From contig OZ038378.1 of assembly GCA_964036045.1 (NCBI GenBank), positions 78,616,001 to 78,680,000 on the forward strand: a stretch of 64,000 nt of DNA, in the 5' to 3' direction. Under the pieces are notes generated by a model. The model was not told where the DNA came from. It did not search any database and saw nothing but the letters and a program-made list of their open reading frames with translations. This document shows positions 2,433 to 47,082 of the stretch, piece after piece. How positions within the stretch are numbered: position 1 is the first letter of the stretch; each line of letters opens with the position of its first letter. This stretch comes from Eutreptiella sp. 'Long Island Sound 2002'. Its lineage: Eukaryota > Protista > Euglenida. The position numbers were made by a program, and so were the translations under genes.

Positions 2433-2519
2433 AATTTGCGTAGCCCACGCCCAAATGTTCTCATTTCATTCGCAATTGAGAGAGTGTAGGAGGCGGCCAA
2501 GAGCCTTGCTTGTTCCGCT

Positions 2520-5732: not shown

Positions 5733-5789
5733 AGTTGTCGGCTGCGCAATTTTGTATGCGCCTACAGATCATATTGCATAAAACAAGGG

Positions 5790-21740: not shown

Positions 21741-22490
21741 AACACCCTTGAGGTGTTTTTGATTGTTTGTGGTCTAGGGCTTTGCGGCTTAGGCCACAGA
21801 CCCCTTCAATGATGAACGCGCTGATAACAACTGAGAAGGGGTTCTGGCATGTTTGCTTCTGTAACCAATTACCATTTGCTGACTGTGAGCCCCTTCAATG
21901 AAGATGCATGACAGTTTACATGTGCTGCTCCGTGTTGCGTGGGTCTTCAGTGTGGACCCCTGCAGGGACCTTTTTCTTAGGACGTGTTTTGTCGTGACGG
22001 AGCTTTGCGAATTCGCGGCCGAGGAATGGGACCGCCCCCAGCAGTCAGTGTACCATGTCCACCATAATGTGCACCATGTCCTCCAATGGCGAGCAAGCAT
22101 TTTGAAAACCCTTATTTGTCAATGTCATGTGCAAGCAACATACATCTGAGAAGGGGCTTTGCAGTGAATTTGAATTTGACTTCCTTTTTTTTTAAACCGA
22201 CCCTCTTTCCTAGCCCTCAAGGCTCATTGCAATGTGCTGCACTTCGCCGTGATCACGCTTTGTCGTTTATCCGCAGGATCTGGTGACGACCATAAAAAAC
22301 CGTGTGCTCTATCTTGTTGTGCTCCGTCTTGCCGTGGTGTTTCTTGAGGAAGTTTGGAAAACCATCCAGAGAAATCCATAGTGTAGGGAAAACACCCCCC
22401 ACGCAACCCCATGGGCAATCGTGTGGAAAAGCCTGCCTTGACTCTTTCAGTGTCAGTGTCACATGGTGTGTATGCGTGTCTCTGTTGTTC

Positions 22491-22581
22491 GATGTTCTGT
22501 GGCCTACGAGGACCATTTTATTTGTGGATGCAAATTTAACTGATGCCAATTGCAATGGTCATGATGCTGTCCCCTGAGATG
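22491..22581 (+). repeat. About 90-bp segment repeated directly at 45982-46073
   Basis: Shared GATGTTCTGTGG...ACCATTTTATTTGTGGAT...TTTAACTGATGCCAATTGCAATGGTCATGATGCT.TCCC.TGAGATG. Confidence 0.85.
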
Positions 22582-23499
22582 GCAGGACCCGCTTGCAGTT
22601 TTAGCTGTGACGTTGTGACTGCAGGTGATGTGTACCACGTATGTACCCTCCCATTTGCCATTGTTGGCACTTTCTCCTGTTTGCATCCCTGTCGGTGATG
22701 ATGGCATTCATTTCACTACCCTGTGGGGCTGGTCTGCCGATGTTGGGTTTGGGTTGCCCCACAAACTCCTGCAGGGACCTTTTTCTCAGGCCCCGTTTCG
22801 GTCGGCAGAGCGGTTGAGAAATGCCCCGTTTTGTCCGCTCGGAACCGCCCCTTGTGGATCTTTCAACGTATGGATGCAAAGCACAGCATGCAGACGTTCA
22901 GCCATTGTCCGCGCTAAGAAGGCCTAGTCCACTGGGCGTCCGGCGTGCCATACCATGACGAAGCGGACAAGTCCACTTTCCACTGCGGCCTTTCCATGCC
23001 TGAGAGTGGTGGCCCCAAAATTGCACGTGCACCCACCGGGTGTTCGTGAGGGCTCCCCCACAGGGTATATCCCACCTTGATATCCAAAAACAATAAACCA
23101 GAGAAGGGGCTCTGCTATGTGTAGCATTTGTGTCACAATGTAACGCACTTTGTTGTGTGCTGCCTTCTGTGTTTTGCTTTCATGCTGTGCTCCAGGTCCA
23201 TCTTCACGCAATGGGAAACAAATTGGAAAACTCCCTCTCCCCCCTCGCCATTCTGCGACCCCCCCCCCTTTCACAATAGCATGCTACGTGTCACATTCTC
23301 CCGGTACCTGTGTCCGTTCAACGCTTATCTGTTCCTTGTTGTGCATGTCTCTCTTGACAAAAAGGGAAATGTGTGTGTTGCATAGGAGACAAGTGTGCAC
23401 TGAGCCTCGTCAACACATAGGGCACTCTTTTGTTATCAACCTCCCCCTTGAGGCGAGGAAGTGCGTCTTGGGCCTAGACCGTTGCGTCTCTGACCCGAA

Positions 23500-26400: not shown

Positions 26401-27960
26401 AGGCCCTGATGACCCAACCGGCCCTCCTGCCGGCCACTGACGGAGCACTCCGGCAGCAAGCCGGTGGTGGGGGCATAGTGTTCTATGCCCCTGGCGCAGG
26501 AGTGGTCCTGTGCGCGTGGTTCGGCTGCCTCGTGTGGGCCTCCCCTAGCTCCATGGAGTGGCTCGCCCGCTTGGTCGCCCTCGCCTTGCTGGATGGATGG
26601 AAGGGCACTCTCCTCTCCGCCCTCGATGCCACATCCGCCCTCTTCCGCTCCTACACCCGGCAGCCCCCCCAGTTCACTCTCCTTGACGCCCTGTGGCGCC
26701 GACTCATCCCCACGCTGCTGCACCTCGAATCCCACCACGAGCTGTGGCTTCGCGCTCAGCACGATACCACCGACCGTGACATTCTGGCCTCCCTCAACAG
26801 CATGGCCCACTCCCTCGCCACCCGGGGTGCCCGCGCGGCCACCCCCTGGACGATTCCCGTGCTGCCCCATCTCCATGAGCGCCTGGTGCTGTTTCACTGT
26901 GGAGCCCTCCTCCTTGACCCCGAGCTCGGCCTTGATGCCGCTTACCATGCGGCGGCCAGTGCCGCCTACTTCACATAAGGCCGCGAGACGTGTCTCCGCC
27001 CTGACGGAGCCGACTTCCTGGCGCTGCTGGAGGGCGACCAGCTGCCGACAGTGGCAGCCAAGCGCGCCTTCGCCTACCGCATCCTGGAGTGGCACCCACC
27101 GCCTGCCCTTGACATCCCCATGGAGTGCCACTTTTGCGCGCTCACCCACCCCCAGCTGGCCCGCCACGTGCGCAGTCGCTGCATGCCAGCATACCAGCGC
27201 CTCCTGTGGGCCCAGGCCATCGTCCTGCAATCAGTCCCTGCCGCCCAGGGGGGGTATGTATGCCCTGACGGCACCCTGTACTCGTCAGCCGGACGCCCCC
27301 TCCTACGGTGCACATGGGACGGCCTCTTCCTGAACACCGACATCCTGCCCGACACCGTCACCCTATCTGGCCTCTGGTACCCTGCCAACGGCACAGGCAG
27401 CTCCCCACTCCTGCCTGTGAAGTGCCGTGCCCTCGTCCAACGCGTTACCCAAGCCCTGGCTACCGCAGTGCCCGACCTGCCGACCGTCCTCAACGAATGG
27501 GCTGCCTTGCAACCCCGCCTTCGACCCCCGCCGTACACTCCGCCGCAGCACCTCCCGGTGTCCGCGGACCGCTCTGGAGATAAACTATGTTGGGAATATT
27601 CTATAACTATGGCCTTGCTGGTGCGAGGGCGGGTCAAGTGGCGCGTGCGCTGGTCAGGCCCCCTCCAGGTGGCCCTGCCCGTCGAGCCCGATTGGCACCC
27701 GGCGGAGGCCACTACCCTGGTAGCGGCACCGCCCGCGCGCCTGCCTTGGGCGCTGGCTCAGCTGGCAGACCTGTCCGCCCTGCGCTCCTCCGGGGGCTAT
27801 GCCCTCCTCACAGGTGAATCACCCGGGAGCGCGGCGCTGGCTCTCTTAGAGCCTATGCAGCCACACCCGATCCGGGGCTTGTGGCTCTACGTCAGCCCTG
27901 GAGTACCGCACACTTGGCCCTTGTGCGGCGATCTGCCGCCCACAGCGTGAACACTCGACA
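23500..27960 (+). mobile_element. Non-LTR retrotransposon (LINE) with RT, RNase H and CCHC finger; frameshifted
   Basis: RT: SAGLDQ.P, IDKNKPNP..HRPVTLTS, DPADAF, GWNQGDNPS, SYSDD, LPMVQGGPG. RNase H: ATDGA..GGGIV, SMEWLA, LDATSA, WLRAQH..LNSMAHSLA. Finger: CHFC-x9-H-x4-C. The 5' limit (Pro/Ser-rich ORFs from 23567) is approximate. Confidence 0.88.
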
Positions 27961-29184
27961 GTAAAGAAATTAGAGGCATCCCCCGCGTTGTGCCTGCTAT
28001 GTGTGTGCCCCCCGCCTGCTTGCCTGATAGGAAGCCAGATGACCCCCCCCGGGAACACCCCACCCCCCCGGGAACGCCCCACCCCGAGAGACACAGACGG
28101 GGAAGGGGGGCGACGTGAGACCGAAGACCCTGAGCCCCGGCGCCCAAGGCATGTGGGACAGGCGCGGCAAGTCCGTGTGACCCGGCATGCGCCGAGGACA
28201 GCCAGGGCGCCGTGCCCCGCGCGCTCCGCACCCGACACCCCAGCCCAAGCCCTGCCCGCGCGCACGCCTACACACAGGACGACGGTATCTTCCGCCCACC
28301 AGCGCTTCAGTGGGGTCTGGTGGCTGTCGATAGTCCGCTCGGCCTTGGAACCGGACAGTCAGGTTGTTGAGCCTCGTGGTGGGGCAGGGAAGGACGCCCA
28401 CACCCGAGGGCCTGCTCCTGCACCAGGCCGCCAGCCCAACCCAACCCAACCCCCCCCCAACCCACTGTTCACGGGCCCTACAGTGCCAACACATTGCAGC
28501 TCATCCGGGAGAATCACGGGTGTGGGGTTCAGTATTTCGTAGACGGGGTGCTGAACCGTCGAGCGATGTACCGGTTTGCGGTTCAGCAGCCCAAGAAAAA
28601 CGCCCTGCAGGTTTGGCAGGAGGGCATGCAAATTAGCCGTTGGCATTTCCTCAGAAGGGACGGGGAGCGTGCAGTGGTGCTTGAAATCCTGTGTGCTACC
28701 CCAAAACCCCCCCGTATCCCCAAGCCGGCCCCATAACCTGTGCCTCGTCGGCCGCTGCCCCCTCCGCCAAGTGATCAGGTGACGCTGACCCAGTATAGCA
28801 CGCACCGCCGTACCTCACTCCTCCCACCGGCTCCGGCACCAAAGCGGCCATGCGCCACCCCGCAGTACGGTTCATTGCTCCCGCGGCGTGCGTGTCAGTC
28901 CGCCCCGCCACCGGTGAGGCCGCAATTTGGGTCATTGCTCCCTACGCAAGCCCCCCTGCAGCGACCCCAGACTTTGGCGAGACGTTCGAATTTCTAGCCC
29001 TTCGGCCAGTGTGCACCGAGCGTCTCTTACACATAGGGGACTCTTCCAAATGGCTCCAAAATGGCTCCCCAAGAGCAAGTATGGTCCAAAGCCCAAGCCA
29101 CAGGCCACGGCACCACCCGGGGGTGTGGATTTTGTTATGATCCCACCGCAACCCTCCTCACCACCACCACCACCACCACCATTG

Positions 29185-29845
29185 CGCGCCCCAGACCCGC
29201 AGCACGCCGCCCCTGTCCCGGCCATGGCGCCAGCTGACTCGGGCGCGCCACAGGGTGCTCCACCCTCTGAGGCCCATCGAAAGCATGCCGTAGAGCCGCA
29301 GCAATGCGCCCCCGTCCGGGCCATGGCGCCAGTGGACGCGGGCGCGACACGGTGCTCCACCCTCTGCCCTGCGAATGTGTGCCCCAGAGCCGCAGCAATC
29401 CGCCCCCGTGGCGGCCATGGCGCCGTTGGAGTCGGGCGCACGACAGGGTGCTCCACCCTCTGCCCAGCGAATGCGTGCCCCAGAGCCGCAGCAATCCGCC
29501 CATGTCCCGGCCATGGCGCCGTTGGACTCGGGCGCGCCGCAGGGTGCTCCCCCCTCTGCCCATCGAATGCGTGCCCCAGAGCCGCAGCAGTCTGCCCCCG
29601 TCCCGGCCATGGCGCCGGTTGACTCGGGCGCGCCGCAAGGTGCTCAACCCTCTGCACGACCAATGCGTGCCGCTGAGCCGCAGCAGTCCATCCCCATCAA
29701 GGCAGTGCCGACAGCTGCCTCGGGTGCGCCACAAGGTGGTCAACCCTCAACACAACCACTGTGTGCCGCTGAGCCACAGCACTCCACCCCTGTCCCGGCC
29801 ATGGGGCCGGTCGACTCGGGTGCGCCACAAGGAGCTCAACGCTGA
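29185..29845 (+). repeat. Coding tandem repeat, 96-bp / 32-aa unit (EPQQSAPVPAMAPVDSGAPQGAPPSAQRMRAP), about 7 copies
   Basis: Directly visible in ORFs 28927-29622 and 29375-29845. It lies immediately upstream of the helicase frame. Confidence 0.9.
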
Positions 29846-29887
29846 TCACAACCATCATGTGCCGCTCCGCCACAGCAGCCAGCACTG

Positions 29888-32800
29888 TTGCCCACTTGGG
29901 GCACATTGAACAACATGGACTACGGTCCTGATGACAACCTCGTGGAAGGGTTTACACAACGGTGGCTTGACCGCGACAGGTTTGTGACCAAAGCATCAGA
30001 GGTGTACACTGTCCATGAGATGGAGGCTGCTGAGGTGTGGGCAAACAAGAACGGCATGAAGCGGAACGTGGCCTTTGAGGAATGGTGGCCCCAAGATGAT
30101 GGCGATGAGGATGGGAATGTGCCCCCACAGCCACAATGGGCCTCCCTAATGGAGGTCTGGGGCAACTATGAGCTGTCCGATGGTGACATGGTGCATGGCT
30201 GGATCACTGCCAACCACAACTGGGACACCTTGAAGCCGGACTTCGAGGCGAGGGTGCATGGAGATGGCATCTCAGGACAGCGTGTTTGGATCAGCTGTGC
30301 TAATAAGCCACACGCCAATCTCACTGGCACCTATTGCTGTAAGGTTGTCTCCGACACAGGTGCCTTTCGCGCCTTGCGTAGGGAGATCCAGCACGGATTA
30401 GCATGGCCCAAACTGCTGGCAAACATCCGGGCCGAACCAAGGGACACGCCTCCCCTGTCAAACGAGGACCACGACATCTTGAAACACCTTGTCAAACGCC
30501 ACGCGTTGAATCCCTCACAGGCGTTGGATTTGCGGCAGGTGTCGGATGAGTCTTGCATCACAGCATTGAATGGAGGTGCTGGCACAAGGAAGTCAGAGAC
30601 CATGGTGGCATGCATCAAGGCCGTGCTATGGCAGCAAGGCCTCCTGGTCGCCCAGAACCCCGATCTTGCTCACCTGGGAACGTTCAACAGGGGCAGGAAG
30701 GTGGGGGGACCTGAGGAAGATACCCAACCCCCCGCATGCGTGTTGGTGACTGCACCCACGAACGCACAAGTCGACATGTTGTTGGCACGCGTGCACGAGG
30801 AGTGTTACAAGGACAGTGTGTTTCGTGAGAAGGTGCTTGGTGACCACCCAGCCCCCTGGTTGCGCCTCCGAGCCCAACGGGCTACCGCCCCACCAAGCCT
30901 TGCACCTTTCGACCAGCTGAAGGTGCAGGAGACCTTGGGGCGCACCGCAGGTTGCAAGGCTACCCTCAAATGTGCGCTCAACTCTTGCTGTGTGCTGTTT
31001 GCCACGGCTGGGATGCTTGCTACCCGGCACAAGATGCTGCTTGGGAAAGGGAAGGAAAAAACCAGGTTTGCGTTTAGCTTTGTGGATGAGGCGTGGAGGC
31101 ACATCATCCCCCTGGGCCTGGACTTAGCCGCCATGCTCAGCCAATGTCTGCTGTGTGGTGACCCCGGCAGTTGCGGCCCTACAGCCACGTCCAGCTTTTG
31201 GCAAGTGCGTGTGAGGATGAGAAGGCTGAGGTACTCCCCGAAGCAGTGGCATGGCCAGCGGATGACACCTTCAAGTTCAACGGGGTTATAAGGCACTCTC
31301 CTGGCCCGCAAGTGCATTGGCATGATTCGCATCGGTTTTGCACCACCAGCACCTTGCAATTCTTTTCGTACTGCACGCGCTGCCGGGCCAGTATCCTGGT
31401 GCAACAGTACCGGATGACCATGCCACGCTCATGCGTGCCTTGTTTACGGGGGGCGCTGTTGGCCACTACCACTCATTTGAGAACCCCCTCCCCGACCCCA
31501 TCCTAAACAACCCCATCCGCATTGTGGACCTCAATGGGCCCACCTGGTGGGAGGAGTTGGAGCGGACTTTGGGGGCAGAGAACCTAGGTAGAATGTTCAA
31601 TCATGTAGAGGAGGCATGGGCCAACCTGCGAATGGATCCGGTGTTGCTAAACAAGGGGGGCCTGAGCATGGAGGAGGGTGTGCTGGTGTGCCATTTTTTG
31701 GAGTATGCTGTCAGGAGAGGCACCTACCAAGCACAGTCGGTAGCGGTACTGACGACTCACTATGCGCAGATGGTGGGCTCCAACACTCCGTGAGGTTTGT
31801 TGGTCGCAAGTGGCAGGCCCACCCGGTAAACCTTCTGACAACGGTTGCGACCCTCCATTGGTTCTAGGGGCTGCAAGCCCGAGTGATCCTGGCCTCCCTG
31901 GTGTCCCCGACACCAGGGATCATGCACGACACCTGGCGGTCAAACACCCTGACCAGCAGGGCGCAGTAGGAGCTGCACCTCTTCGGGCGGTGTACAGAGT
32001 GGACCAACCAGCTCACCCCTGGTGTATGGGTGAATGCACTGCACGCGGTGTAGTGGGAAGCAGGCTCCAGGACTGTGAGCGACACTCTTCAGCTGGCAGG
32101 GGTTCTGAGGGAGGCCGCAGCTGTTGAGAGGATTGTGCATGGCACAATCTACCGGTTGGCCGGGGGGGTGGTGGGGCACAGGCTGTGGAAGCCATGGCAG
32201 AGGCACAAGAGGGCACGGGACCCATGGGGGTATGCACCAGGCAGTGCGGATCAGTTGCTTGACTTTGAGCGCATCATGGCCAACACTCGGAAGGATGAGG
32301 TGTCAGTCCGTGTCAAGGATGCACTGGGGAACATTGTGAACCCCCGCCATCTGGGGGTCATCCTACCTGACTTCACCGAATGGGCGCTCCTGTACGTCCT
32401 GGTTGAGGACGATGGGCAGGATTCGGGGGACTGGGGGGGCCTGGTGAGGGTAACCAACACATCCAAGCTTGACCTGTGGGAGCAGCGACTCGTCCAACAC
32501 TTGGTGGGAAAGCCCTTCTACCACAAGCAGAAGTACCGAAATCAAAACACAGTAGGGACGTAACGGACGATCAACCTGCCCTTGTGGCAGGACGCGTACA
32601 ACTGCTTGGATTCGCTGCCGTTCTTGTCAGGGGACTTCCGCACCCCTATTGGGGTGTACGTGGCGTCCCTGTTCCATGGGGTGGACCGCTGCCCTAGGAC
32701 CCTTGGGGTGTGAGCACCAGTTTAGGTGCACGAGGAGGAAGCCCCCCTTGGGTGGCGCAAGCTGCCCCACGGGGTGAAAGATTACGTTTTGGGGCGCCAC

Positions 32801-33138
32801 TAAGTTGACCCTCTGAGGCAGCATGGTTTCCATGCAGGCCTGACCATGGCGCCAAGCGTGCATGTTGTCTAACCCTGTCTGTAGAAGAACATGCATTGAC
32901 CCATGACGTTTGACCATCCCTGGCACATCACGAGAGTACCAGTCACAGCACCACCGGGAAGGGGTACACACATGTGATCACCACCTTGTTTGCTGCTTTG
33001 TACGTTGACTATGTTTGCCTGCAATGGTACGAGTGTGCCCATGGCTGCCTACCCAAGATTGAAGGAGGTCTCCAAGGTCTTCAGACAATGTCCACGTGGG
33101 GTTGCCCGAAAAGGAGGTTGAAGACACGCCAATGATAA
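29888..33138 (+). pseudogene. UPF1/SEN1/DNA2-like superfamily 1 helicase (AAA_11 + AAA_12) with unknown C-terminal extension; decayed
   Basis: LNPSQ (Q motif), GGAGTRKSET (Walker A, G>R), LVTAPTNAQVDML (Ia), FVDEA (Walker B), GDPG|QLRP (III, frameshift), LVQQYRM (IV), VAVLTTHYAQ, TVATLHWF*GLQARVILASL (V) and RSNTLTSRAQ*ELHLFG (VI). Coding-like text continues to TGA TAA at 33133-33138. Confidence 0.88.
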
Positions 33139-33165
33139 TTGACATTCGACAATGATAAATGACAA

Positions 33166-36100
33166 TTGACGGATGTATGTCCGTCAAATATTTAGGGGGC
33201 CGACACCCCCAAAATGTTTGACGGATGTGTGTCCGTCAAATATTGGGGGGGTGTAGACCCCCAAAATATTTGACGGATGTGCGTCCGTCAAATTTTGGGG
33301 GCTGTAGACCCCCAAAATATTCGACGCAGGTACGTCCGTCCGATATTTTGCGGGTGTAGACCCCCAAAAATATTTGACGGATGTACGTCCATCAAATATT
33401 GGGGGGGCCTACACCCCCGAAATGTTTGACGGGTGTGGTTCCGTCAAATGTTTGGGGGGTGTAGACCCCCAAAATATTTGACCAATGTGCGTCCGTCAAA
33501 TATTTTGGGGGTCTACACCCCCCAAATATTTGACGGACGTACATCCGTCAAATATTTTGGGGATGTAGGCGCCCCAAATATTTGACGGACGCACATCTGT
33601 CAAATATCTTGGGGGTGTAGGCCCCCCAAATATTTAACGGATGTACATGCGTCAAATATTTTGGGGGTGTAGGCCTACGCCCCCAAATATTTGACGGACG
33701 TACGTCCTCAAATATTTGGGGGGTGTGGACCCCGAAATATTTGACGGATGTGGTTCCGTCACATATTTGGGGGCTGTAGACCCCCAAAATATTTGAGGGA
33801 TGTGGTACCGTCAAATATATTGGGGGCTGCAGACCCCCGAAGTATTTGACAGATGTGGTTCTGTCAAATGTTTGGGGGGCCGAAACACCCAAAATATTTG
33901 ACGGATGTGGTTCCGTCAAATATTTTGGGAGTGTAGGCCCCCCAAATGTTTGACGGACGCACATCCGTCAAATATTTTGGGGGTGTAGGCCCCCAAGCAT
34001 TTGACAGAACCACATCCGTCAAATATTTTGGGGGTGTAGGCCCCCCAAATATTTGACGGACGTACATCCGTCAAATATTTTGGGGGTGTAGGCCCCCCAA
34101 ATATTTGACGGATGCACGTCCGTCAAATATTTTGGGGGTGTAGGCCCCCCAAATATTTGACGGACGCACATCCCTCAAATATTTTGCGGGTGTAGGCCCC
34201 CAAAATATTTGACGGATGTACGTGCGTCAAATATATGTGGGGTGTAGACCCCCAAAATATTTGGCGGATGTGGTTCCGTCAAATATTTTGGGGGTGTAGG
34301 CCCCCCAAATGTTTGACGGACGCACATCCGTCAAATGTTTTGGGGGTGTAGGCCCCCCAAACATTTGACAGAACCACATCCGTCAACTATAGCCTAGGCC
34401 CCCCAAATATTTGACGGACGTACATCCGTCATATATTTTGGGGGTGTAGGCCCCCCAAATATTTGACGGACGCACGTCCGTCAAATATTTTGGGGGTATA
34501 GGCCCCCCAAATATTTGACGGACGCACATCCGTCAAATATTTTGGGGGTGTAGGCCCCCCAAATATTGGACGGACGTACATCCGTCAAATATTTTGGGGT
34601 TGTAGGCCCCCCAAATATTTGACGGATGTACATGCGTCAAATATTTTGGGGGTGTAGGCCCCCAAAATTTTTGACGGACACACATCCGTCAAATAATTTG
34701 GTGGTGTAGGCCCCCCAAATATTTGACGGATGCACGTCCGTCAAATATTTTGGAGGTGTAGGCCCCCCAAATATTTGATGGACACACATCCGTCAAATTT
34801 TTTGGGGGTGTAATCCCCCCAAATATTTGACGGAACCACATCCGTCAAATATTTTGGGGGTCTACACCCCCCAAATATTTGACGGACGTACATCCGTCAA
34901 ATATTTTGGGGCTGTAGGCCCCCCAAATATTTGACGGACGCACATCCGTCCATTAGTTTGCGGGTGTAGGCCCCCCAAAATTTTTGACGGACGCACATCC
35001 GTCAAATATTTTGGGGGTGTAGGCCCCCCAAATATTTGACGGACGGACATCCGTCAAATATTTTGGGGGTGTAGGGCCCCCAAATATTTGACGGACACAC
35101 ATCCGTCAAATATTTGGGGGTCTACACCCCCCAGATATTTGATAGATGTACATGCCTCAAATATTTTGGGGGTGTAGGCCCCCCAAATGTTTGACGGACG
35201 CACATCGGTCAAACATTTTGGGGGTGTAGGCCCCCCAAATATTCGACGGACGCACATCCGTCCAATATTTTGGGGGGTCTGCACCCCCCCAACATTTGAC
35301 GGACGCACATCCGTCAAATGTTTTGGGGGTGTAGGCCCCCCAAATATTTGACTGAACCACATCCGTCAAATATTTTGGGGGTGTGCACCCCCCAAACATT
35401 TGACAGACCTACATCCGTCAAATATTTGGGGGGCCTACACCCCCAAAATTTTTGACGGACGCACATCCGTCAAATTTTTTGGGGGTGTAGGGCCCCCAAA
35501 TATTTTACGGACGCACAGACGTCAAATATTTGGGGGTCTACACCCCCCAGATATTTGACAGATGTACATGCGTCAAATATTTTGGGGGTGTAGGCCCCCC
35601 AAATGTTTGACGGACGCACATCGGTCAAACATTTTGGGGGTGTAGGCCCCCCAAAGATTCGACGGACGCACATCCGTCCAATATTTTGGGGGGTCTACAC
35701 CCCCCCAATATTTGACGGACGCACATCCGTGAAATATTTTGGGGGTGTAGGCCCCCCAAATTTCTGACGGAACCACATCCGTCAAATATTTTGGGGGTGT
35801 ACACCCCGCAAACATTGGACAGACCTACATCCGTCAAATATTTTGGGGGTCTACACCCCCCAAATATTTGAAGGAACCACATCCGTCAAATATTTTGGGG
35901 GTCTACACCCCCCAAATATTTGACGGAACCACATCCGTCAAATATTTTGGGGGTCTACACCCCCCAAATATTTGACGACATACATCCGTCAAATATTTTG
36001 GGGGTTTACAGCCCCAAAATATTTGACGGCCGCACATCCGTCAAATATTTTGGGGGTCTACATCCCCCCAATATTTGACGGACGGGGTTCGGCCAAATAT

Positions 36101-37846
36101 TTGAGGCGTGTAGACCCCCCAAATATTTGACGGACGTACCTCCGTCAAATATTTGGAGGGCCTACACCCCCAAAATATTTGACGGATGTGGTTTCGTCCA
36201 ATATTTGGGGGGCCTACACCCCCAAATTATTTGACGGATGTGTGTCCGTCAAATATTTGGGGGGCCTACACCCCCAAAATATTTGACGGATGTGGTTTCG
36301 TCAAAAACTTGGGGGGTGTAGACCCCCGAATCATTTGACGGAGAAGCGTCTGTCAAAAATTTGGGGGGCCTACACCCCCCAAATATTTGACGGATGTACG
36401 TCCGTCAAATATTTGGGGGGCCCAAACCCCCAAAATATTTGACGGATGTACATCCGTCAAATATTTGGGGGGTGTAGACCCCCAAATGTTTGACGGATGT
36501 ACATCCGTCAAATGGTTGGGAGGCCTACACCCCCAAATTATTTGACGGATGTGCGTCCGTCAATTATTTGGGGGGCCTACACCCCCAAAGTATTTGACGG
36601 ATTTGGTTTCGTCAAATACTTGGGGGGTGTAGACTCCCGAATTTTTTGACGGATGTGCGTCCGTCAAAAATTTGGGGGGCCTACACCCCCAAAATATTTG
36701 ACGGATGTACGTCCGTCAAATATTTGGGGGCCCAAACCCCCAAAATATTTGACGGATGTACATCCGTCAAATGGTTGGGGGGCCTACACCCCCAAAAAGT
36801 TTTACCGATTTGGTTCGGTGAAATATTTGGGGCGTGTAGACCCCCCAAATATTTGACGGACGTACATCCGTCAAATATTTGGGGGGCCTACACCCCCAAA
36901 ATATTTGACGGATGTGGTTTCGTCAAATACTTGGGGGGTGTAGACCCCCAAATTATTTGACGGATGTGCGTCCGTCAAATATTTGGGGGGCCTACACCCC
37001 CAAAATATTTGACGGATGTACGCCCGTCAAATATTTGGGGGGCCTAGACTATATTTGACGGATGTGGTTCCGTCAAAAATCTTTTTGGGGCCTACACCCC
37101 CGAAATATTTGACGGATGTGCGTCCGTCAAATATTTGGGGGGCCTACACCCCCTAAATATTTGACGGACGCACATTCGTCATATATTCTCGGGGCCTAAA
37201 CCCTTAAAATATTTGACGGATGTGCCTCCGTCAAATATTTCGGGGCTGTAGACCCCCGATATATTTGACGGATGTGGTTTCGTCAAATATCTGGGGGGTG
37301 TAGACCCCCAAAATACTTGACGGATGTGCGCCCGTCAAATATTTGGGGGGCCTACACCCCCAAAATATTTGACGGATGTGCGTCCATCAAATATTTCGGG
37401 GGCCTACACCCCCAAAATATTTGACGGATGTGCGTCCATCAAATATTTGGGGTGCCTACACCCCCAAAAATTTTTGAGGGATCTGCGTCCGTCAAATGTT
37501 TGGGGGGCCTACACCCCCAAAATATTTGACGGTCGTACATCCGTCAAATATTTGGGGGGGCTACACCCCCAAAATATTTGACGGATGTGCGTCCATCAAA
37601 TATTTCGGGGGCCTACACCCCCAAAATATTTGACGGATGTGCGTCCATCAAATGTCTGGGGTGCCTACACCCCCAAAGTTTTTGAGGGATCTGCGTCCGT
37701 CAAATGTTTGGGGGGCCTACACCCCCAAAATATTTGACGGACGTACATCCGTCAAATATTTGGGGGGCCTACACCCCCAAAGTATTTGACGGATGTGCGT
37801 CCGTTAAATATTTGGGGGGCCTACACCCCCAAAATATTTGACGGAC
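33166..37846. repeat. 4.7-kb palindromic satellite, 52-bp unit, about 90 units
   Basis: Unit AAATATTTGACGGA-(6-nt loop)-TCCGTCAAATATTT-GGGGG-(7-nt loop)-CCCCCA. Both halves are hairpins and share the self-palindromic AAATATTT. Copy number is estimated as length divided by unit size. Confidence 0.97.
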
Positions 37847-37952
37847 ACGGTGCGTCCCGGTTGTGGGGTTTCACCTGTACCGTTTCTCCTTGTAGTTTGT
37901 TTTTGCCTGATTACATCTTTTCCGGTGTGAGTTCGCGTTCTGCCAGTTAGCC

Positions 37953-38175
37953 TACTGTGCGCCTTTGAGCCACAGCTTTCGGTTTTGGTCCGAGCCATTG
38001 CGCTTTGCGACTGAACCCTGATCGCCTACTGTGCGCCTCTGAGCCACAGCTTTCGTTTTCGAGCTGAGCCATTGCGCTTCGTGACTGAACCCTGGTCGTC
38101 TACTGTGCGCCTTTGAGCCACAGCTTTCGGTTTCAGCCTGAGCCAGTGCGCTTTGCGACTAAGCCTTGACGTAAC
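37953..38175. repeat. 74-bp tandem repeat, 3 copies
   Basis: TACTGTGCGCCT(T/C)TGAGCCACAGCTTTCG starts at 37953, 38027 and 38101. Confidence 0.92.
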
Positions 38176-38181
38176 CACTGC

Positions 38182-39772
38182 GTGCCACTGAGCCGGCGCA
38201 CTTCGTTTATTGTCATAGCGCTAGCGCTCTCCACAACAAACCCACCCACAACGGCGTCTCTTGGACCAGCTGGTGAGCCTGAGGACAAGCCCGGCTGGCA
38301 GTTTGAGTACCAAGGACCTGCCCTTGATTGCCCCCCCGAGTTGTGGGAGCCCCATAGTGGTCACGGTTGTTGACCTTGCAAGCCACGAAGGTCACCCAAA
38401 CCTCTAACAGCCGTGGTGCACGAGCCAAGCAATGGACCAGCCTCCTGAGTGGCCACCGCAGCGCTTGATCGAGCCCGCAAGAATGAAGTATGCCCTAATG
38501 CTGGCCACAAGAGGGGTGGGAGGCCACGCTGGGGGTGGCCGGGCGCCGATGGAGACGGTTGAAGGACCGCATGGCCTCGTGTGACCTTGACGTGGTGAAT
38601 CCGCATGGTTGCAGGGTATTGTGCCGGTTCATGTACACCGAGCATGGGTTTGCCATGCCCACCATGCATGATGGGGGTAGCCACGTGCACTACCGGGAGG
38701 TTGCCACAGAATTGTGGGAACAACTTGCAAAACGAAACAGTGGCCGGCCAGGCAGTCGTAAGGCCGGTGCTATTGCCAGGTGGCCGTCAAGTGTGAAGAT
38801 AGCAGAGCAAAGGGAGGTTTGGTGTGAACTGGTGCGTGCCCTACCTTTGGTCGACGAGTGGCCGTTCTGGACTGGGGACGAGGCATATCCCACCACTACC
38901 ATGGGTTACTTCTATGACAAGGCTATTCGCCACGCTACGCCTGGCCCATATCTGTGGTCCCAAGCGACAAGTGTGCCCAAACCACTGGTGAGCGACCTGT
39001 TGCCAGGCCCCAAGGCGCCTCTGCCCGTTGGCGCAACTCGTTGCTGCCTGAGGCTGCGGACTCACGTGCGTGTGTCACTGTCAGACAGACACGGCAAGAG
39101 CGCTTTGACCAAGCGTTGCTGCAAGCCGCCCATGGGGCAGCCCGCTGCCTCACGATTGCATGCCAGGGGATACAAGAGCAGTGCAAGGAACCATTGACCG
39201 AGGACAGCCTGGTGGCAGCATACACGCTGGGTTGCCACTTCGCCAATAGCATGCGGGTGCCCATGCAAGACTGCAACGAGCTGTTGATGCGTTGCAGCCC
39301 CTTTAGCCCACTGGTGCCAAACAGTCACCCCGGCCATCCGCATGCGGCCGTACGGGTTGTGGACAACGCGTGGAGGGATGATGGAGGTCTTGAGATGTTG
39401 CAGCTACTAGTGGAGGAGATGGAGGCGGCCGGTGTACAGCCTGCATACACCCAACGATTAAGTCCACAAGGGCACCCTGGAGGTGACCCAAGTGACTCCA
39501 CGTCCTCTGCCGTAGCGCAGGGGGTTGGAGCGGCGGTGCTCATGGCAAGAGACCCCTCAGGCGATGAGTCTGTGACTCCCACTTCGTCCTCCCTGGCACA
39601 AGGGCGTGGTCCCCCGGCAGGTGCACAAAGTGTGGATAGCCCTGGTGAGGTGTTCAGTCCACCTGACCCCCCCCGGGTGGTGCGACCGACTCCCCGGCAT
39701 GTGTTGGACATGGAACACCAGACCCCAGGTCCCAGGTCTGCCCCACCGATGAGTCACCTATTGCATCCATAG
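38182..39772 (+). pseudogene. Unknown coding-like N-terminal region of the hAT-linked multidomain frame
   Basis: Overlapping ORFs 38535-39197 and 38954-39772 read as globular protein (YREVATELWEQLAKR, WCELVRALPLVDEWPFW, RVVDNAWRDDGGLEMLQLLVEEM) and are joined by a frameshift. No family recognised. Confidence 0.45.
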
Positions 39773-40269
39773 TAGACCCTACAGGGGTTCTCACGCCACA
39801 CTCCCCAAGCCCCCACCCTGCGTGTTTGACACCGGCGGTTAGTGATGGAGGGGTGGCGAGTTCCTTGGAGCAGTCTCCTATACCACTTGCACAGAAACCC
39901 AAGGAGCCAGCTGCTGTGGACTGTACTCCTTCTAGCACAGGCACTGTGGCGACAGTGAAGGCAGTCAGTCCAGTGCGGATTCAGGGTCGACCCCGGTTGA
40001 ACACCCCAGTTCATTGGCGACAGTGAAGGCTTGCAGTCAGTCCAGTGCGGATTCAGGGCCGACACCGGTTGAACACCCCAGTTGATTGGAACAGAGCCCA
40101 TGGAGCAAGAAGCGCCCAGGGGTTACACCCCCAAGTAATGGGGCTGCCGTGAAACGTGGCAAGAAAGAGCAAGGCGCAAAGACAACTCCGATAGATGCTG
40201 ATGCTATTGCATTGGACGACGTGGATCAAGAGCCCAACAAGGCCGAGGGTGGCAGAGTCCTACCAACCG

Positions 40270-40790
40270 TGAGGTCCTTGAAGCTTCGCATTCTTCCGGA
40301 CCAGTACGTTGCAGGGGCATGTTTCTACTATGCCGTGGCCCAAAGCCTGCATGCTATTAGCAGCAACGCCCCGTTGGACAGCGCATCGCTGCGGGCAAAA
40401 GCCATTGCCGTGTTTCGCGACATGTGTGGGCTTTCAGTTCAAGAGTCTGCACTATCTGTGAACCGGGATCTTGAGAAGGACACATGGCATGGCCGGCCCC
40501 AAGGGGGAATGCCTGAGCACTTTGCTGCCTTGGCGCAGCATGTGGATGGTAGTGTGGTGTTGCTGCGATCAAACAGGTTCAACATTGTGACGTCAGGGTT
40601 TGGGATGGACAGCGCGTTGACATCCGCTGCTATTTGGGTGCTTGGACGGGAGAATCCGCTGCACTTCCATGACTGTGGGGATATGGAGGAGCAGTGCCAC
40701 CGCGCGATGGTGGTGGTTATTGCCGGGGCGGAACGAGATGGTGTCAAAGGAGGTGGTCATTTCCGGGGTGCAGTCTTTGACCATTCGCTG
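40270..40790 (+). CDS. OTU-like cysteine protease domain within ORF 40086-41405
   Basis: YVAGACFYYAVAQSL...SASLRAKA (catalytic Cys codon 40320-40322), QGGMPEHFAALAQHVDGSVVLL (WGG.E..ALA box) and GGGHF (His, 40758-40760). Confidence 0.72.
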
Positions 40791-40929
40791 CAGGTAGCCC
40801 CCTTTTGCACGTTGCACGGGATCATGGGCATCTTGCCATACAAGCGTGGGCCGGTTGGGGGGTTTAGAGCGTGGCATTTGCAGCTAGGGGTTGGCGGTAT
40901 GAAGGGCCACACCAACGCAAAAGACTGCC

Positions 40930-41400
40930 GCCGCACTCGTCTAGTGCAACAGACGCGCACTTACAAGCCACTTGTGACCCTGGTGAACAAGATGGCAAGG
41001 CAGATGTTGTCTGATTGGTTCACATGGACCACCATGCGATTGTCTTGCACTATCCTCACAAAACCGCATCAGCGTGTGCATGACACGTCCCCTTGGTGGG
41101 CAGTGTTTTCCACCGGCCAGCACACGCGGGGACACTTATGGGTGGAGGTGGGTGGTGTATCTAATGGTCCGGGTGGACGGGGATGTAGTATGCAGTGCTT
41201 GGATGGTGTTACACGGGATGGCGCCACGTACGATGTATGCCAGCAACCGGTTCTCGTACGTACCGGTGCATGGCATGGCACTTGTTCTTGGCACGGGGAG
41301 AGGAGGTTGGTGGTGTTGTACTCCCGTGGTGACTGGCGGACACTCCTGCCGTGGGACCGTGCATTCCTCAATGAGACCGCATTCCGCTTACATGCAGGTG
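40930..41400 (+). CDS. 2OG-Fe(II) dioxygenase domain, TET/JBP-like, fused in frame to the OTU domain
   Basis: FTWTT..L...TKPHQRVHD...FSTGQHTRGHLWVE...YDVCQQPV...WHGT.SW.GERRLVVLYSR gives the DSBH pattern with distal His (41274-41276) and the 2OG-binding R-x-x-V-x-Y. The proximal HxD reads HQR, so it is non-canonical or mutated. Confidence 0.68.
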
Positions 41401-41429
41401 CATAGTGGGCCACTTGGTGGAGCACCGTG

Positions 41430-42310
41430 GCGACCATGGGGAACGGAGAATCCATATAGGTACAACTGGTGTTGGTTGGGTACCACGCTGCAGTGCCTGT
41501 TGGTGGCGTCGGGTGGACATGGAGGATAGCACGCAAGATGCCTGGACGAGGAGGGTGTCTGGGGACCATTGTGGCAGGGTGTTGTGGCACATGGAGGAGG
41601 TGGTGCATACAATCCACAGGACATTGCTGAGAGGCTAGCCATGGAGGATGCCATGTGAGAGACGGTGTGCCGATGCAGCGGACGATGCAAGTGCAAAGCC
41701 CCCGCACCAAAATTCCAATGGATGCGGCAGGCAGAGATGGCGGAATGTTGGAAGTACATGGTGCCCAAGCTCACGGCCGCTGGGGCGGTTGCTTTGTCAT
41801 GTTGTTTGTCCTACGAGCAGTTCTGGCAATACTCTGGTGCCTGTGGGGTGAAGGTTCCGCGGGAGGGGGGGGGAGACAGGCATGCCAGCGCAGGCACGGC
41901 ATGTGATGAATCAGGGGCAGAGTGTACGACAGCGCGTGAAGGAGGGAATGAAGGGGCAACCGGTTGGGTTACCTGATAACCCCCCCCCCCCTTGTCCGTG
42001 TGGGAGTGACCTGAGGGAGGCAGCAATGTATGCATCTTTGGTGTTCAATGAGGTCGTGGGGTTACATGTCCATAACCAATAGGAGTACAAGTTGGTTGTG
42101 GACCATGAGTTTCTCGATTGCTTGGGATGGAAATGGTCCTTGCATGCCATGGTGTTGCACATTGGATCAACGAGGGAGGAGGGTCACTTTGTGGTGTATG
42201 TCGTTTCCAACGACAGGTGGTGGCTCTGTAACGACACCACGGTGAAGGTCATGACCCCCCCCTTGACCCGCGAAAAGCGACGTTTCTGCTATACAAACGC
42301 AAACAAACCG
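41430..42310 (+). pseudogene. USP / peptidase C19 deubiquitinase domain, broken by stops and frameshifts
   Basis: Cys box GTENPYRYNWCWLGTTLQCL (Cys 41470-41472), YNPQDIAERL (QQDA.E-like) and His box WSLHAMVLHIGSTREEGHFVVYVVSNDRWWLCNDTTV (His 42185-42187). Confidence 0.82.
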
Positions 42311-42379
42311 ATTTGGTTGTACCAGACATGTCGCAGTTTGCCTCCCAACGGACAGGACCCCCAGCCCTTGGTCAGACAC

Positions 42380-42645
42380 GGGATGCCCATAGCACACCTA
42401 TTGACACCTCGGTGCAAGCCATGGCGCTGGCACCAGGTGCGCCCCCCCTCCCCTCCTTCAACACAGGGTGCATCAAGGGTTGGGTACAGGCAGAACAGGC
42501 CTATGCATGCCCAGAGCGTGCCTATGGACGCCTCTGTGCCAGCCACGGCGCTGGCACGAGGTGCACCCCCCCTCCCCCACCTGCAACACAGAGTGCATCA
42601 AGGGTAGGGGACCGGAACATGAGTGTGCATGCCCAGAGCATGCCC
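42380..42645 (+). repeat. About 122-bp coding-like tandem repeat linking USP and transposase, about 2.5 copies
   Basis: (C/G)ATGCCCA(G/T)AGC recurs at about 42382, 42506 and 42628, encoding D.SV.A.ALA.GAPPLP. Confidence 0.7.
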
Positions 42646-42705
42646 GATGAGATGTGTGTGGCTGCCTCGGCGCCGCTATAGACGTCCTCAGAATTTGTTG
42701 AGGCA

Positions 42706-45300
42706 GTGGCACAGTTGCTGCAGAAGCGCAAGGTGCGAGTGGCAAGGCATCTGAGAGTGCGTGCTGAAGCACACCAGATGCAACTTAGAGCGCGGCATGC
42801 AAAAGAGTGGGATGCGCGGCATGCAGAGCATGGCATGTCACAATCGTTAGTGGCACAGTCAGTGGAGCAGGACAGGTTGAGGTCTGTTGCATTGGCCGCA
42901 TCAGGGAAGGATGCATTGTGCGTGTTGATGCAGGCCACTCCCATGCAACTGGACAGTGGTCCGAAGACACTACAAATGTTTGTAGCCGCTCATTGGCAGT
43001 ATCAATTCACGACAAGTGGGGGTGTTGAGTGTGTGTGTTGTGCGTGGGCTAATGTGTGTGGCATTCCTGGGGTGGCGCGTACCCCTAAGACCAGTGAAGC
43101 CTTGGTATTGGGAACATATGCTGCAGGGAAGCGCATGAAGACCTTTGGCCCAAAAACGTGGCGGAAGGAGGTGTTGGAAAGCCACTTGGGGTTATCACGT
43201 GGCAAAACATCAACGCGAAAGAACTTGCGTAGGCCAGCGCACCACCACCGACTGGCCGAAGACAGTTTCAAGCTGCATTGTGCAGAGCGATATCGCGCAT
43301 TGTGCCCCAGTGCTGCTGCCACAGCTGACGTGGTGGGAGGGAACATTGTGTTCATCAGGGGGGAAGCCATGGACATTGGTGTGGCTATGTCGGATGCTGA
43401 GGCAGCCATTCTGTAACGGTTGGTTGAGGTGTATATTGGGTTACGCATGTGCACTTCCATCCGTGCTATAAGTGAGCGCATCCTTCTGCACTGCTCTCTG
43501 ACATCTGCCCCTGGGCACCATGCATCACGGCGGTGGATAGTTGAGAAGGCCATTGCAGCAATGCATGATGCCATGCAAGATGAGGTAGCGCACACCTTAT
43601 TCTTGGCATCGTCCATTGCAGTGTTGCTTGACGGCTCGGATAGGCAGAGGCATCGCATCAATGAGTACGCCATTCTGCTTATTTTCCCGGAGACTGGCCC
43701 TGGGGGCATGTGTGAGGTGTTCCTTGGTGTGGTGGATGTGGCCTGTGGTGATGCGCATGAGGTTGCAACGCAGCTAGAATGCGTCCTGCTGTCCTAGATT
43801 CCTGACCGTGATTGGTGGGCAAAGAGGGTAGTGACCTTTGCAGTGGACGGGGCTTCTAACCTTGTTGTGCGAGTTGCCAGTGCGCGGCAGGTTGTTGATG
43901 TCTCTATCATTGAGAGCAATGTGTTTGCCTTGATACGGAAGTGGTTAGGGTTGATGACACCCTTGGGTGAGCCGTGCCACGTGTTGCAGCGCAAATTGGG
44001 TCTTGCATTGGAGGCTGCTAGCCCAACCCATGTTGATTACTTGGCGGCCGTCAATCGGCAAGGAGGCTTGTACAATGGGGCACGGCAGTGGAAGGAGTTG
44101 CAAAAGTGTGTGCAAAAGCATGTGCAGGATAAACGAAGTGGCTTGCAGCTCATCCCCACAAGTCATCGCATCAGGTGGTCACAGGCGCATGCATGGCGCA
44201 ACACTGCTTTTTTGGCCAATGTCCTTTGGGTGGCACGACACTTGGATTCCAAGGTGCAGCATTCTACCAAGGAGGAGGATGTGTGGGAGGACTGCCATGA
44301 TGCCAGTTTGCTTGCATGGGGGGTGGTTTATGGGGACATCCTGCATGGCATGCGTTGTTTTAACAGTGTGGCACAACTACGTGCGCCCACTGGTGCACAC
44401 TTAGCCACTGCAACAGGTATGCTACAAGCCTGGTTGCGGAGGGTGGCTCGCAAGGAGGGTCCAGGGTGGTTGCAATTCAAGGAGTAGACTGTGACCGGTG
44501 CGTGGCGTGGTGTGCAATTGGTCCAGTTTGATTCAAGTGGGCAGAAGTGTGCAACAACCCCTCCTTTTTCAGGCGTTCAGGCGCGTGCAGTGACTGATAT
44601 GTTGCTTGCAGGCATCAAGGAGGGGCAGGCAACCATTGACCCCAAGGGGGTGTTGGAGTGCGCAGTATTGTTGGACCATGGCCGTTTCGTTGCCCTCCCG
44701 GTCAATGAGCGTGCTGCATATGGGGTGGAGCAGTTGCGTCCGTTCATGGCTTCATACCAAGAAGAGTTGCGCGCAGCACATGTGAACTGTGACCGTGCCT
44801 TGGTAGAGTGGGAAGGCCTTAAGGAGCACATGCTGCAGCACTTTGCAACTGTGCAAATGTCCAAGATGTGGGAGGCATTGGCACCTGAAAGGGCACATGC
44901 ACAGTGGGTGAATGTGTGGCGCGTTCTCGCATTATTGCGAACATATTGCCCCGCTGAAGCTGCAGTAGAGCGTGCCATCTCTTTGCGTGGGAGGTTCTAC
45001 GGTAGTATGCATGACACTGTTGAGACACATGTCCTCAGCATGTGCATGGCATTGCATTCCAACTTGCCCCCTTTACAGCAATGGGCAAAGGGACAAGGCG
45101 TTGCAGTGGCACGCCACCTGGCTGCCCATGCACGCTTCGATCTGCGCCCAAGACAGAGGGTTTCAAGGAAGGTAGGGGACAGAGAATCTGTGGAGGCTGC
45201 AATGCTTCAATGTCTGCAAGGTTATGAAGCAGTGGCTGATGATGGTGACAGCCTGCCCATTCTTTGGAGGGCCAGGTACACCACTGAGGTCAACGGCACC
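42706..45300 (+). pseudogene. hAT-superfamily transposase (ZNF862/DUF4371-like) with N-terminal TTF-type zinc finger
   Basis: One frame with three in-frame stops (43414, 43795, 44485). Motifs: GVECVCC...LESH...HHHR (ZnF), VLLDGSD (D1), EVFLGVVDV, FAVDGAS (D2), PCHVLQRKLGLAL, IRW and YCPAEAAVERAIS...LSMCMALHSN (dimerisation domain, catalytic E). Confidence 0.88.
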
Positions 45301-45960
45301 CTCAGGAAAGGCCACAGAACGGCACCAGGCAGATGTGGTCAACACTGTTGCATCCGATGGGACCCGTGACTCGCATGCTGGCAACCATGACTTCATCACT
45401 TTTCGCAGAGGTATGGAGTGTGCCACATGCAAGAAGGAAGTTTGCATCTGGTGCAATACATGTCTGGTGTGCCATGCATGCGTTTGCGCAAGTTCCTTGT
45501 GGGAACGTGGTGGTGAATGTTGTAGATGATGTCTGTGATGAGGGGGAGAACAATAGAGCAGACTAATTGGCCACACCACGCAAGCCAAATAAGGGGCGTG
45601 GTGTGGCCAGGATGCGGGCGAAATTGGTGATGGCAGCGCAGAATGGCAGGCTGCGTGATTGGTCAAAGGGGGCGTTGTTGAATTGTGTGGATGTGCTTGG
45701 TGTGAAGGTGGCAGGTAACAGCAATCGGCGGGAACTGCGGGACCTTGCTACGCAGCAAGCGTTGCCATTATTGCAAGAATGGGATGCCTTTGTGCCGGAC
45801 ACAGACCGTGTCACCCGTTCTGCGGCACCACCAAGCAGCTCCCAGCCAAGTTGCTCGCCGCCAGTGGATGTCATGGATGGACTCATCGATGAATGTGAGG
45901 ATGCCCACGTATTTGCATGTGCCTTTTTGTTGTTGTGTGCTGTCTTCGAAGATTTTTCCC
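45300..45960 (+). pseudogene. Cys-rich segment and HeH/SAP-like motif downstream of the hAT domain
   Basis: CATCKKEVCIWCNTCLVCHACVC (about 45418-45490), then WSKGALLNCVDVLGVKVAGNSNRRELRDLA in ORF 45567-45983. Confidence 0.45.
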
Positions 45961-46189
45961 ATTTTCCCTGTTGGCACATCTGATGTTCTGTGGCGTTACC
46001 ATGACCATTTTATTTGTGGATCTGAGTTTAACTGATGCCAATTGCAATGGTCATGATGCTATCCCTTGAGATGTTTCCCGTTTTCCCTGTTTGGCACATT
46101 TCCCCCACGTTTCCCATTTGGTTTTCAGTGCTACATATGGCTTTTTTGTGTGGTGGTCGTTCAACTTTCCCACTTTTCCTGCTCCCACA

Positions 46190-46238
46190 TTTTCCCCTTT
46201 CCCCTTTCCCCTTTCCCCTTTCCCCTTTCCCCTTTCCC
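46190..46238. repeat. (TTTCCCC)n simple repeat
   Basis: Seen directly. Confidence 0.95.
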
Positions 46239-46241
46239 AAA

Positions 46242-46489
46242 GTACACAAACAAATTGTCGGCTCAAACAACCAGAATCAGAATCAAATTGAAGTTGTCAC
46301 ATACATTGCTGCCAACAACAGGTGTGCAATTGTTTTCCAAACGGGGGGGTCTGTGTTTTCTGTGGCGCCTTTTCTCCTTGGGGGGGGGGGGGGGGGGGGC
46401 TGGAAAGCACCCAATAGTGGGGGGGGGGGATGGGTGGGGGGGGTTTCCTGTGAAGAATTTGATGTGGACAACGGCGGGGGGGGGTTGAT
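46242..46489 (+). repeat. About 250-bp dispersed repeat, copy B
   Basis: Inverted homologue of 21479-21740. Confidence 0.9.
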
Positions 46490-47082
46490 TTAGGCATAGT
46501 TTCTCCCAATTTCCTCTAGGCATGGGACCCCTAGACCCACCTCCAGTACATAAGAATATCAGACATCTTCTTGGACAGACCGCACACACAACATCCCTTA
46601 TCAGACATCAGACATCAGACTTTATGCACATAGCTGGTCAACAAGTTTTGATTGTGCAGCCAATGGGGGGCTGCCCGGGACCCGACCCTTTACGCCGACC
46701 CCCCCGCTCTCCCTAGAAATTGGCCGGAAAGTGCCGGACCATGGGCGCCAAAGGTGCCCTAAGGAAAATTTGCTTAATCTCGTAGAGGGTCAAAAATTGC
46801 GTTTTCACCCCACGTGTCTGCACTCAAAACACGCAGTTCTTTGAAGAGAACTCAATAATCGATGAAAACCAAAGTGGACCAAATATCAATACCACCCATG
46901 TGCAAAGGTTTGTCAGAGATGACCCATAACCTAGTGGGTGAAGCACTGCCTTTGAAGCTGAAAGGTTCTGGGTTCAATCCCTAGTGGGGGCAATCTACAG
47001 GACTCGAGGAAGGATGAGGGACACAATGGAAAAAAATTTTATGTTTTTTTTGGTTTGTTTTTGGTGCTTTGAATTTATACCA

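Follow-up and report, generated by a model that had tools for sequence, protein, structure and literature searches.

Genes of the TET/JBP family are carried in fungi by several groups of DNA transposons: Kyakuja-Dileera-Zisupton, hAT7, Harbinger, IS3EU, EnSpm, Plavaka and Helitron (PMC12730594). The same survey did not find a TET-bearing retrotransposon, and the enzymes were proposed to counter the silencing of the element that carries them (PMC12730594). Kojima's PE-type TETs of fungal transposons were accepted on an HHpred E-value of 1.4 together with fold similarity (PMC12730594). A different dioxygenase cargo is known from orchids, where Ty3/gypsy retrotransposons carry an AlkB-type m6A demethylase domain (PMC9289625). 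No paper was found in the literature on a hAT element combining a dioxygenase with deubiquitinases.

The locus described here lies in a 64-kb stretch of DNA, which was analysed as a whole and is called the window. As in the fungal TET+ transposons, a gene with a double-stranded beta-helix (DSBH) domain lies upstream of the transposase gene and in the same orientation, in a cut-and-paste element, which is hAT-type in the window and hAT7 in the fungi. Here too, the element occurs in multiple copies, and the gene appears to have been kept by selection for the fitness of the element. The fungal PE type, which has HxE in its metal motif, is a further parallel: both are natural variants of the carboxylate ligand, with His here and not Glu, and in both cases the family was assigned from fold similarity together with weak evidence from the sequence. 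Unlike the fungal elements, the locus has an estuarine protist host, and its domain stays below the Pfam threshold for Tet_JBP. Further differences are the Cys-protease-like domain joined to the DSBH domain, the USP joined to the presumed transposase and, within the 25-kb element, an SF1 helicase and a palindromic tandem array of 4.7 kb. The predicted domain has an identity of 13–15% to CcTet of Coprinopsis cinerea (PDB 7vpn, 7w5p, 8jkk) and to NgTET1 (PDB 4lt5, 5cg8), and their Asp ligand is His in the family studied here.

The explanation that we consider reasonably probable as a whole is that the window holds a decayed copy of a DSBH cargo gene that was under selection in a hAT-type element, with a putative three-His metal site and, in its active form, perhaps a base-oxidising activity.

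Structure and copies of the transposon

The gene had been read from the sequence as borne by a mobile element, and the ends of the insertion bear this out (Table 1). The 15-bp terminal inverted repeats match at 12 of 15 positions and begin with CAG (CAGCTCTGTGTATAG at the left end, at 21365; CAGCTATGTGCATAA at the right end, at 46636, reverse-complemented). They are flanked by a perfect 8-bp target-site duplication. Subterminal inverted repeats of ~270 bp (21469–21740 versus 46242–46498) led to the left end. In the copies L002 and L003, which match the window at 92–94%, the similarity ends exactly after position 46636. An 8-bp target-site duplication and short inverted repeats starting with CAG are a hallmark of hAT elements. 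The insertion is therefore a giant hAT-type cut-and-paste DNA transposon.

Table 1. Coordinates of the features in the window
Feature	Position	Strand	Basis or remark
Complete transposon insertion, 25,272 bp	21365..46636	+	TIRs, subterminal repeats, end of similarity in other copies
Left target-site duplication copy, 8 bp, GTCAACAA	21357..21364	.	
Right target-site duplication copy, 8 bp, GTCAACAA	46637..46644	.	
Whole two-domain gene, relic	39951..41405	+	tblastn of the 512-aa product of L001 (10001-11539)
N-terminal conserved domain, candidate OTU-like Cys protease	40263..40805	+	Alignment A4
DSBH (2OG/Fe dioxygenase-fold) domain	40926..41402	+	AF2 model, fold searches, alignment A3
Metal motif H-Q-R-V-H-D	41067..41084	+	Second ligand His changed to Arg (codon CGT, 41073-75)
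KPHQRVHD codons	His 41067-69; Arg 41073-75; Asp 41082-84	+	Read in the open frame
Distal His 41274-76, 2OG-binding Arg 41301-03, aromatic Tyr 41319-21	41274..41321	+	All intact in the window copy
Codons of the distal His of AWHGT and the Arg of RRLVVLYSR	41274-76; 41301-03	+	Read in the open frame
Downstream gene of 1416–1473 aa, relic: USP His-box, then presumed transposase	41882..45893	+	tblastn

At intact loci, the dioxygenase gene sits between a gene of ~370 aa and the gene of 1416–1473 aa, and the window is colinear with this three-gene unit (tblastn). The USP His-box of the downstream gene was recognised by the Pfam family UCH (E 1.4e-7 for the window, 3.3e-5 for L004). It was the only match of the intact 1416- and 1473-aa products in Pfam and PDB sequence searches, which gave no assignment of the transposase to hAT. 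The left part of the element encodes the SF1 helicase (AAA_11, plus AAA_12 in L003); a methyltransferase or glycosyltransferase was not detected there.

Several further features of the element were recorded. The array at 33166–37845 in the window comprises ~90 copies of a 52-bp palindromic unit. Its position is kept in L002 (~580–7750) and L003 (~5830–7560), with differing array lengths. The stretch 24000–30000 in the left half of the element has 66–67% G+C and a strong negative GC skew, compared to 49–58% G+C in the rest of the window, and holds several ORFs of 150–376 aa with no Pfam match. Either a nested insertion or additional cargo could account for this stretch. Relative to the window copy (41781–41798), L003 has an insertion of ~2.4 kb (L003:11463-13859) just downstream of the dioxygenase gene.

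The domain occurs only once in the window. A word-indexed search of proteins yielded 56 clusters, which are located on large contigs of ENA assemblies throughout, and none of the 56 had a named member or a Pfam domain. Two subfamilies were seen, with ~85% and ~52% identity to the window protein, and one cluster consisted of 144 sequences. The retrieved copies (L001–L006) were all from assembly ERZ25074135; L001, L004 and L005 belong to a subfamily of young, intact copies, and the window copy is an old one. Related sequence was also present in estuary and sediment metagenomes. A DinoSL search, made as a test for dinoflagellate origin, had no match.

The two-domain gene and the decay of the window copy

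The product of intact copies is 512–559 aa long and has two conserved halves, the C-terminal one being the DSBH domain. The sequence-only reading had described a fusion to OTU. A fusion was indeed found, as a domain with a Cys motif (AGAC-F/Y-Y-A) and a His motif (GGHFRG) lies in the same ORF; in alignment A4, the Cys is invariant and the His near-invariant. The name OTU could be kept for a candidate only: the N-terminal half had no match to Pfam or to PDB sequences, and an OTU-bearing cluster reached just 0.76 by language-model Atlas features, which is a weak hint. A 72-bp tandem duplication (two copies, 90% identical) is located at 39947–40089 in the window, in a Ser/Pro-rich N-terminal region and directly before a stop codon found only in this copy.

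This stop, an in-frame TGA at 40083–40085, cuts off the N-terminus of the window protein; the other contigs have TCA there, with the difference at 40084. A second private change affects the metal motif. Position 41074 is G in the window (Arg) and A (His) in every covering contig of four public runs, including two contigs from an estuary metatranscriptome. The downstream gene has at least six in-frame stops (42080, 42679, 43414, 43795, 44485 and 45564) in addition to frame changes. The window copy is dead: a metal-ligand His is lost, the frame is cut by a premature stop ahead of the domain, and the transposase gene is broken throughout. Without the second ligand His and with the premature stop, it cannot carry out the activity proposed below. 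The HxD position had been correctly read as HQR in this copy, and the doubt raised about its activity was justified.

In run X16, an estuary metatranscriptome, short contigs (120–190 nt, 85–96% alike) cover parts of the gene corresponding to 39964–41488 in the window, including the region of the metal motif. Family members may thus be transcribed; DNA carry-over is another possible source of these contigs.

Fold of the C-terminal domain

All five motifs listed from the sequence are present in the open frame 40086–41405(+), namely FTWTT, KPHQRVHD, GQHTRGHLWVE, AWHGT and RRLVVLYSR, and homology and the predicted fold support them as real DSBH motifs. Chance was considered as the origin of the motifs and was ruled out by the homology statistics and the fold.

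The structure was predicted with AF2 for the corresponding stretch of an ortholog (P0022:350-512). Based on the 84-sequence alignment A3, the model reached a pLDDT of 91 and a pTM of 0.85. With 15 close copies alone, the pLDDT was 38, and the distant relatives had to be added for a confident model. Two N-terminal helices lead into a jelly roll of 11 strands, with another helix at the C-terminus, the arrangement by which the Fe(II)/2OG superfamily is recognised. The sequence-only reading had suggested structure prediction with a Foldseek comparison as its check, and had named the absence of a predicted DSBH fold as grounds for rejection; as the fold was confirmed, these grounds fell away.

In the fold searches, every neighbour with more than about 100 aligned residues was a 2OG oxygenase. 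The first match of Foldseek in the PDB was CcTet (E 1.5e-3), followed by a bacterial P4H, lysyl hydroxylase, ALKBH7 and CMD1. Matches in the viral structure library were 2OG oxygenases exclusively, some of them annotated as JBP1/TET. The ESM Atlas gave a TM of 0.78–0.79 to two unnamed eukaryotic clusters, one diatom-rich and the other auto-named 'GIP protein'. Judging from the model and these searches, the window encodes a real DSBH fold, and the domain belongs to the Fe(II)/2OG dioxygenase superfamily.

Metal site and 2OG site

The consensus of the element family is H-Q-H-x-x-D, with His in the column of the canonical Asp. Residues were counted over 38 cluster representatives covering the metal site, of which fewer cover the distal residues. 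The first His was present in 35 of 38 clusters, the His at the Asp place in 34 of 38 and the Asp three residues further on in 32 of 38. Arg at the Asp place occurred in the window copy only. The distal His was found in 25 of 27 clusters, the 2OG-binding Arg in 23 of 24 and an aromatic residue at +6 from it in 21 of 23. The Arg follows the distal His after 9 residues, and both are near-invariant among the 84 relatives in alignment A3. A basic residue for the C5 carboxylate of 2OG is thus available, also in the window copy. The canonical facial triad is not: the family has H-x-H...H, and the window copy has H-x-R.

The 66 canonical relatives follow the pattern HxDxxN...GGELWVE...WHxT.PW.G.R.x5.Y. 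All of them have the H, D and N of HxDxxN, the G of GGELW and the distal H, and nearly all have the Arg. The H-x-H form also occurs in a sister group (P0085, P0094, P0101, P0108, P0120 and P0126). In a quick ML tree, the H-x-H rows and their decayed derivatives formed one group of 15 (SH-aLRT 93), apart from the 67 HxD rows. This single group is consistent with a single origin of H-x-H.

The dN/dS of the domain between the two element subfamilies was about 0.2 (0.16–0.23), a rough figure as dS was near saturation. Within the subfamilies, it was 0.6–1.0. Such a pattern is expected when selection acts on a gene during the active phase of its element and the inserted copies then decay. As H-x-H is conserved and under selection, it is the working motif of the family and not damage. 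The sequence-only reading had suggested checking the consensus for an intact HxD; the consensus gave HQH instead, which is selected, shared with the sister clade and not a decayed HxD. Nor does the neighbouring VHD rescue the motif, as its Asp aligns with the canonical Asn, three residues after the ligand place. The metal-binding Asp is replaced by His in the transposon-borne lineage and in a sister lineage of another multi-copy unit of the same genome.

To our knowledge, 2OG oxygenases do not usually have a His where the carboxylate ligand is expected, and their chemistry could be altered or lost by such a change. The replacement may have produced a protein that no longer uses 2OG, either a 3-His enzyme of the cupin type (thiol-dioxygenase-like) or a non-catalytic module that binds a metal or ligand. 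That H-x-H is fixed and selected speaks for such a protein, as does the presence of ergothioneine dioxygenase, mercaptosuccinate dioxygenase and ADO among the Foldseek and VIA matches to the HxH model. The alignments to small cupins span just the core of ~70 residues, however, and the conservation of the 2OG Arg and the aromatic residue is hard to explain if 2OG is not bound. We regard this possibility as improbable. From the conserved residues, we infer that the active protein would bind a metal through three His and would still bind 2OG.

Family assignment

Neither the window protein nor the members of the element family matched Pfam, NCBIfam or PDB sequence models, and a PHROGs scan was blank or uninformative. 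The evidence on the family came from the relatives. When the 84 relatives were scanned with Pfam, 23 matched Tet_JBP (PF12851) and eight matched 2OG-FeII_Oxy_3. The Tet_JBP matches were below the threshold, with E-values from 1.5e-4 to 1 and at most 21 bits compared to a gathering score of 34.9. Their recurrence among the relatives is far beyond chance for one family in 24,736 models.

The element-family profile had no match in the PDB. The 84-sequence profile found CcTet at an E-value of about 0.3. In this alignment, the HxD block and the H...GER...aromatic (F) block are collinear, with identical His-x8-Arg-x5-aromatic spacing. The profile of the 66 canonical relatives matched no TET and no other oxygenase in the PDB. 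As the match to CcTet was lost with the canonical-only profile, it was not counted as evidence on its own. In VIA-align, NgTET1 was tied with AlkB and PiuC, and the longest structural alignment was that to NgTET1. Iyer and colleagues reportedly defined the TET/JBP signature in 2009 as HxD, GG before strand 4, H-x-small residue and R-x5-aromatic. The relatives and the family have the GG (GGELWVE), H-x-T and R-x5-Y, and the HxD is replaced in the element family.

TET/JBP is the nearest named family of the domain, below threshold. The domain is a candidate member only, as all scores are below the cut-off and the CcTet match is not robust. The original assignment to TET/JBP therefore does not hold as it was stated, given the sub-threshold Pfam scores, the modest E-value of CcTet in Foldseek, the canonical profile that finds no TET and the tie in VIA-align.

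The same data bear on other functions. The domain may be a protein hydroxylase (P4H/OGFOD-like), which would partner the two deubiquitinase-like modules of the element, namely the OTU-like region within its own protein and the USP linked to the presumed transposase, and act on host or element proteins and not on DNA. Three times as many relatives preferred Tet_JBP (23 versus 8), CcTet came first in Foldseek, NgTET1 gave the longest structural alignment, and the His-x8-Arg-x5-aromatic spacing is that of CcTet. Besides, the known transposon-borne DSBH cargo is all nucleic-acid-acting (PMC12730594, PMC9289625). We consider a protein hydroxylase rather unlikely.

An AlkB-like demethylase of RNA or DNA (m6A, m1A, m3C) would shield the transcripts of the element, or the RNA genome of the copia relatives. 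None of the 84 scanned relatives matched the AlkB Pfam family, the second Arg of the AlkB motif R-x5-R is an aromatic residue in this domain, and the AlkB matches rank under TET in Foldseek. Precedents for such shielding are known from orchid Ty3/gypsy elements and from plant-virus replicases. The probability of this function is low in our view.

A role in base J synthesis had been raised from the sequence. In this case, a JBP-type thymidine hydroxylase would start base J/hmU synthesis on the DNA of the element. Base J is present in euglenozoan DNA, and TET/JBP is the nearest named family. JBP1 and JBP2 are, however, recognised by their accessory modules, and no J-DNA-binding domain, SWI2/SNF2 ATPase or glucosyltransferase was detected in the gene or in the 25-kb element, whose only ATPase is the SF1 (AAA_11/AAA_12) helicase. 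The distance of +9 from the distal His to the Arg fits CcTet, while it is roughly +16 in JBP1. Moreover, the Asn of HxDxxN is invariant in the canonical relatives; we take this Asn to be the cytosine-N4 contact of TET2. The link to base J was not supported by these findings, and a JBP-type enzyme is very improbable.

Distant relatives in other mobile elements

A profile of the C-terminal half was searched against 1.84 billion representatives, where 126 proteins reached E<=1e-3. Apart from the copies of the element itself, the hits were diverse proteins that matched profile positions ~60–211 with E-values from 1e-14 to 1e-4. Relatives with a canonical HxD scored between 1e-14 and 1e-8. The word-indexed search with profile A3 gave no annotated bridge proteins.

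Nine long distant relatives were scanned for further domains. Four had RVT_2 of the Ty1/copia type and/or an integrase core, and a fifth had a Gag zinc knuckle. The four DSBH-bearing polyprotein relatives with RVT_2 and/or rve are P0091, P0102, P0111 and P0129. In P0111, which comes from another assembly, the DSBH domain occupies residues 57–193 of a 1272-aa polyprotein. A canonical HxDxxN DSBH was seen in Ty1/copia-type polyproteins (RVT_2, rve, zf-CCHC) in these four and in P0122, placed at the N-terminus or ahead of the integrase; L010:5001-8819 is a locus of this kind. The DSBH domain of Ty1/copia polyproteins may be an undescribed retrotransposon accessory domain. As in the orchid AlkB elements, a 2OG/Fe dioxygenase lies inside the polyprotein of an LTR retrotransposon in these distant relatives. 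The orchid elements are Ty3/gypsy elements of plants with an AlkB domain, whereas the relatives found here belong to a different DSBH clade, are of the Ty1/copia type and come from protists.

P0085 of the sister H-x-H clade is a stand-alone DSBH protein of 188 aa (L007, L008 and L009, at 7001–7567). The same assembly holds identical copies on four or more contigs, and every copy is followed by an ORF of 200–680 aa with no Pfam match. Based on these repeated copies and the Pfam-blank ORF next to each of them, P0085 probably belongs to another mobile unit. Pfam and PDB searches gave no name for the carrier of this clade.

The domain belongs to an unnamed clade that occurs almost only in mobile elements of protists, in Ty1/copia polyproteins and in DNA transposons.

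Proposed function and significance

The DSBH domain in the window forms the C-terminal part of an accessory protein encoded by the giant hAT-type transposon. In its lineage, His has taken the place of the Asp in the metal motif; the 2OG-binding Arg and the distal His are retained, and purifying selection acted on the domain during the active life of the element. With a putative three-His metal site and presumed 2OG binding, the active protein would most likely oxidise a base in nucleic acid (5mC or T), at or close to the DNA of the element itself. Among the functions considered for the active form, TET/JBP-like base oxidation on element DNA ranks first, although its probability is clearly below even; protein hydroxylation and RNA demethylation compete with it. 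The oxidation might blunt silencing by the host, as proposed for the fungal TET+ transposons. A role as self-demethylase, as suggested by the sequence-only reading, would follow by analogy with those transposons (PMC12730594).

A wider interpretation covers the whole clade. Mobile elements across protists (Ty1/copia elements, giant hAT elements and other DNA transposons) would carry TET/JBP-like base oxidases, one lineage of which has a selected three-His centre with the 2OG Arg. In a possibly euglenid host with hmU-derived base J, the active enzyme would write or erase marks on the element's own DNA and so evade silencing. We consider this wider interpretation unlikely.

The result for the window itself is modest because its copy is dead. 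If the clade is a base oxidase, the idea of a self-carried epigenetic counter-measure would extend from fungi to protists and to LTR retrotransposons. The family would then also offer a natural, selected His-for-Asp variant of the facial triad of 2OG oxygenases for study.
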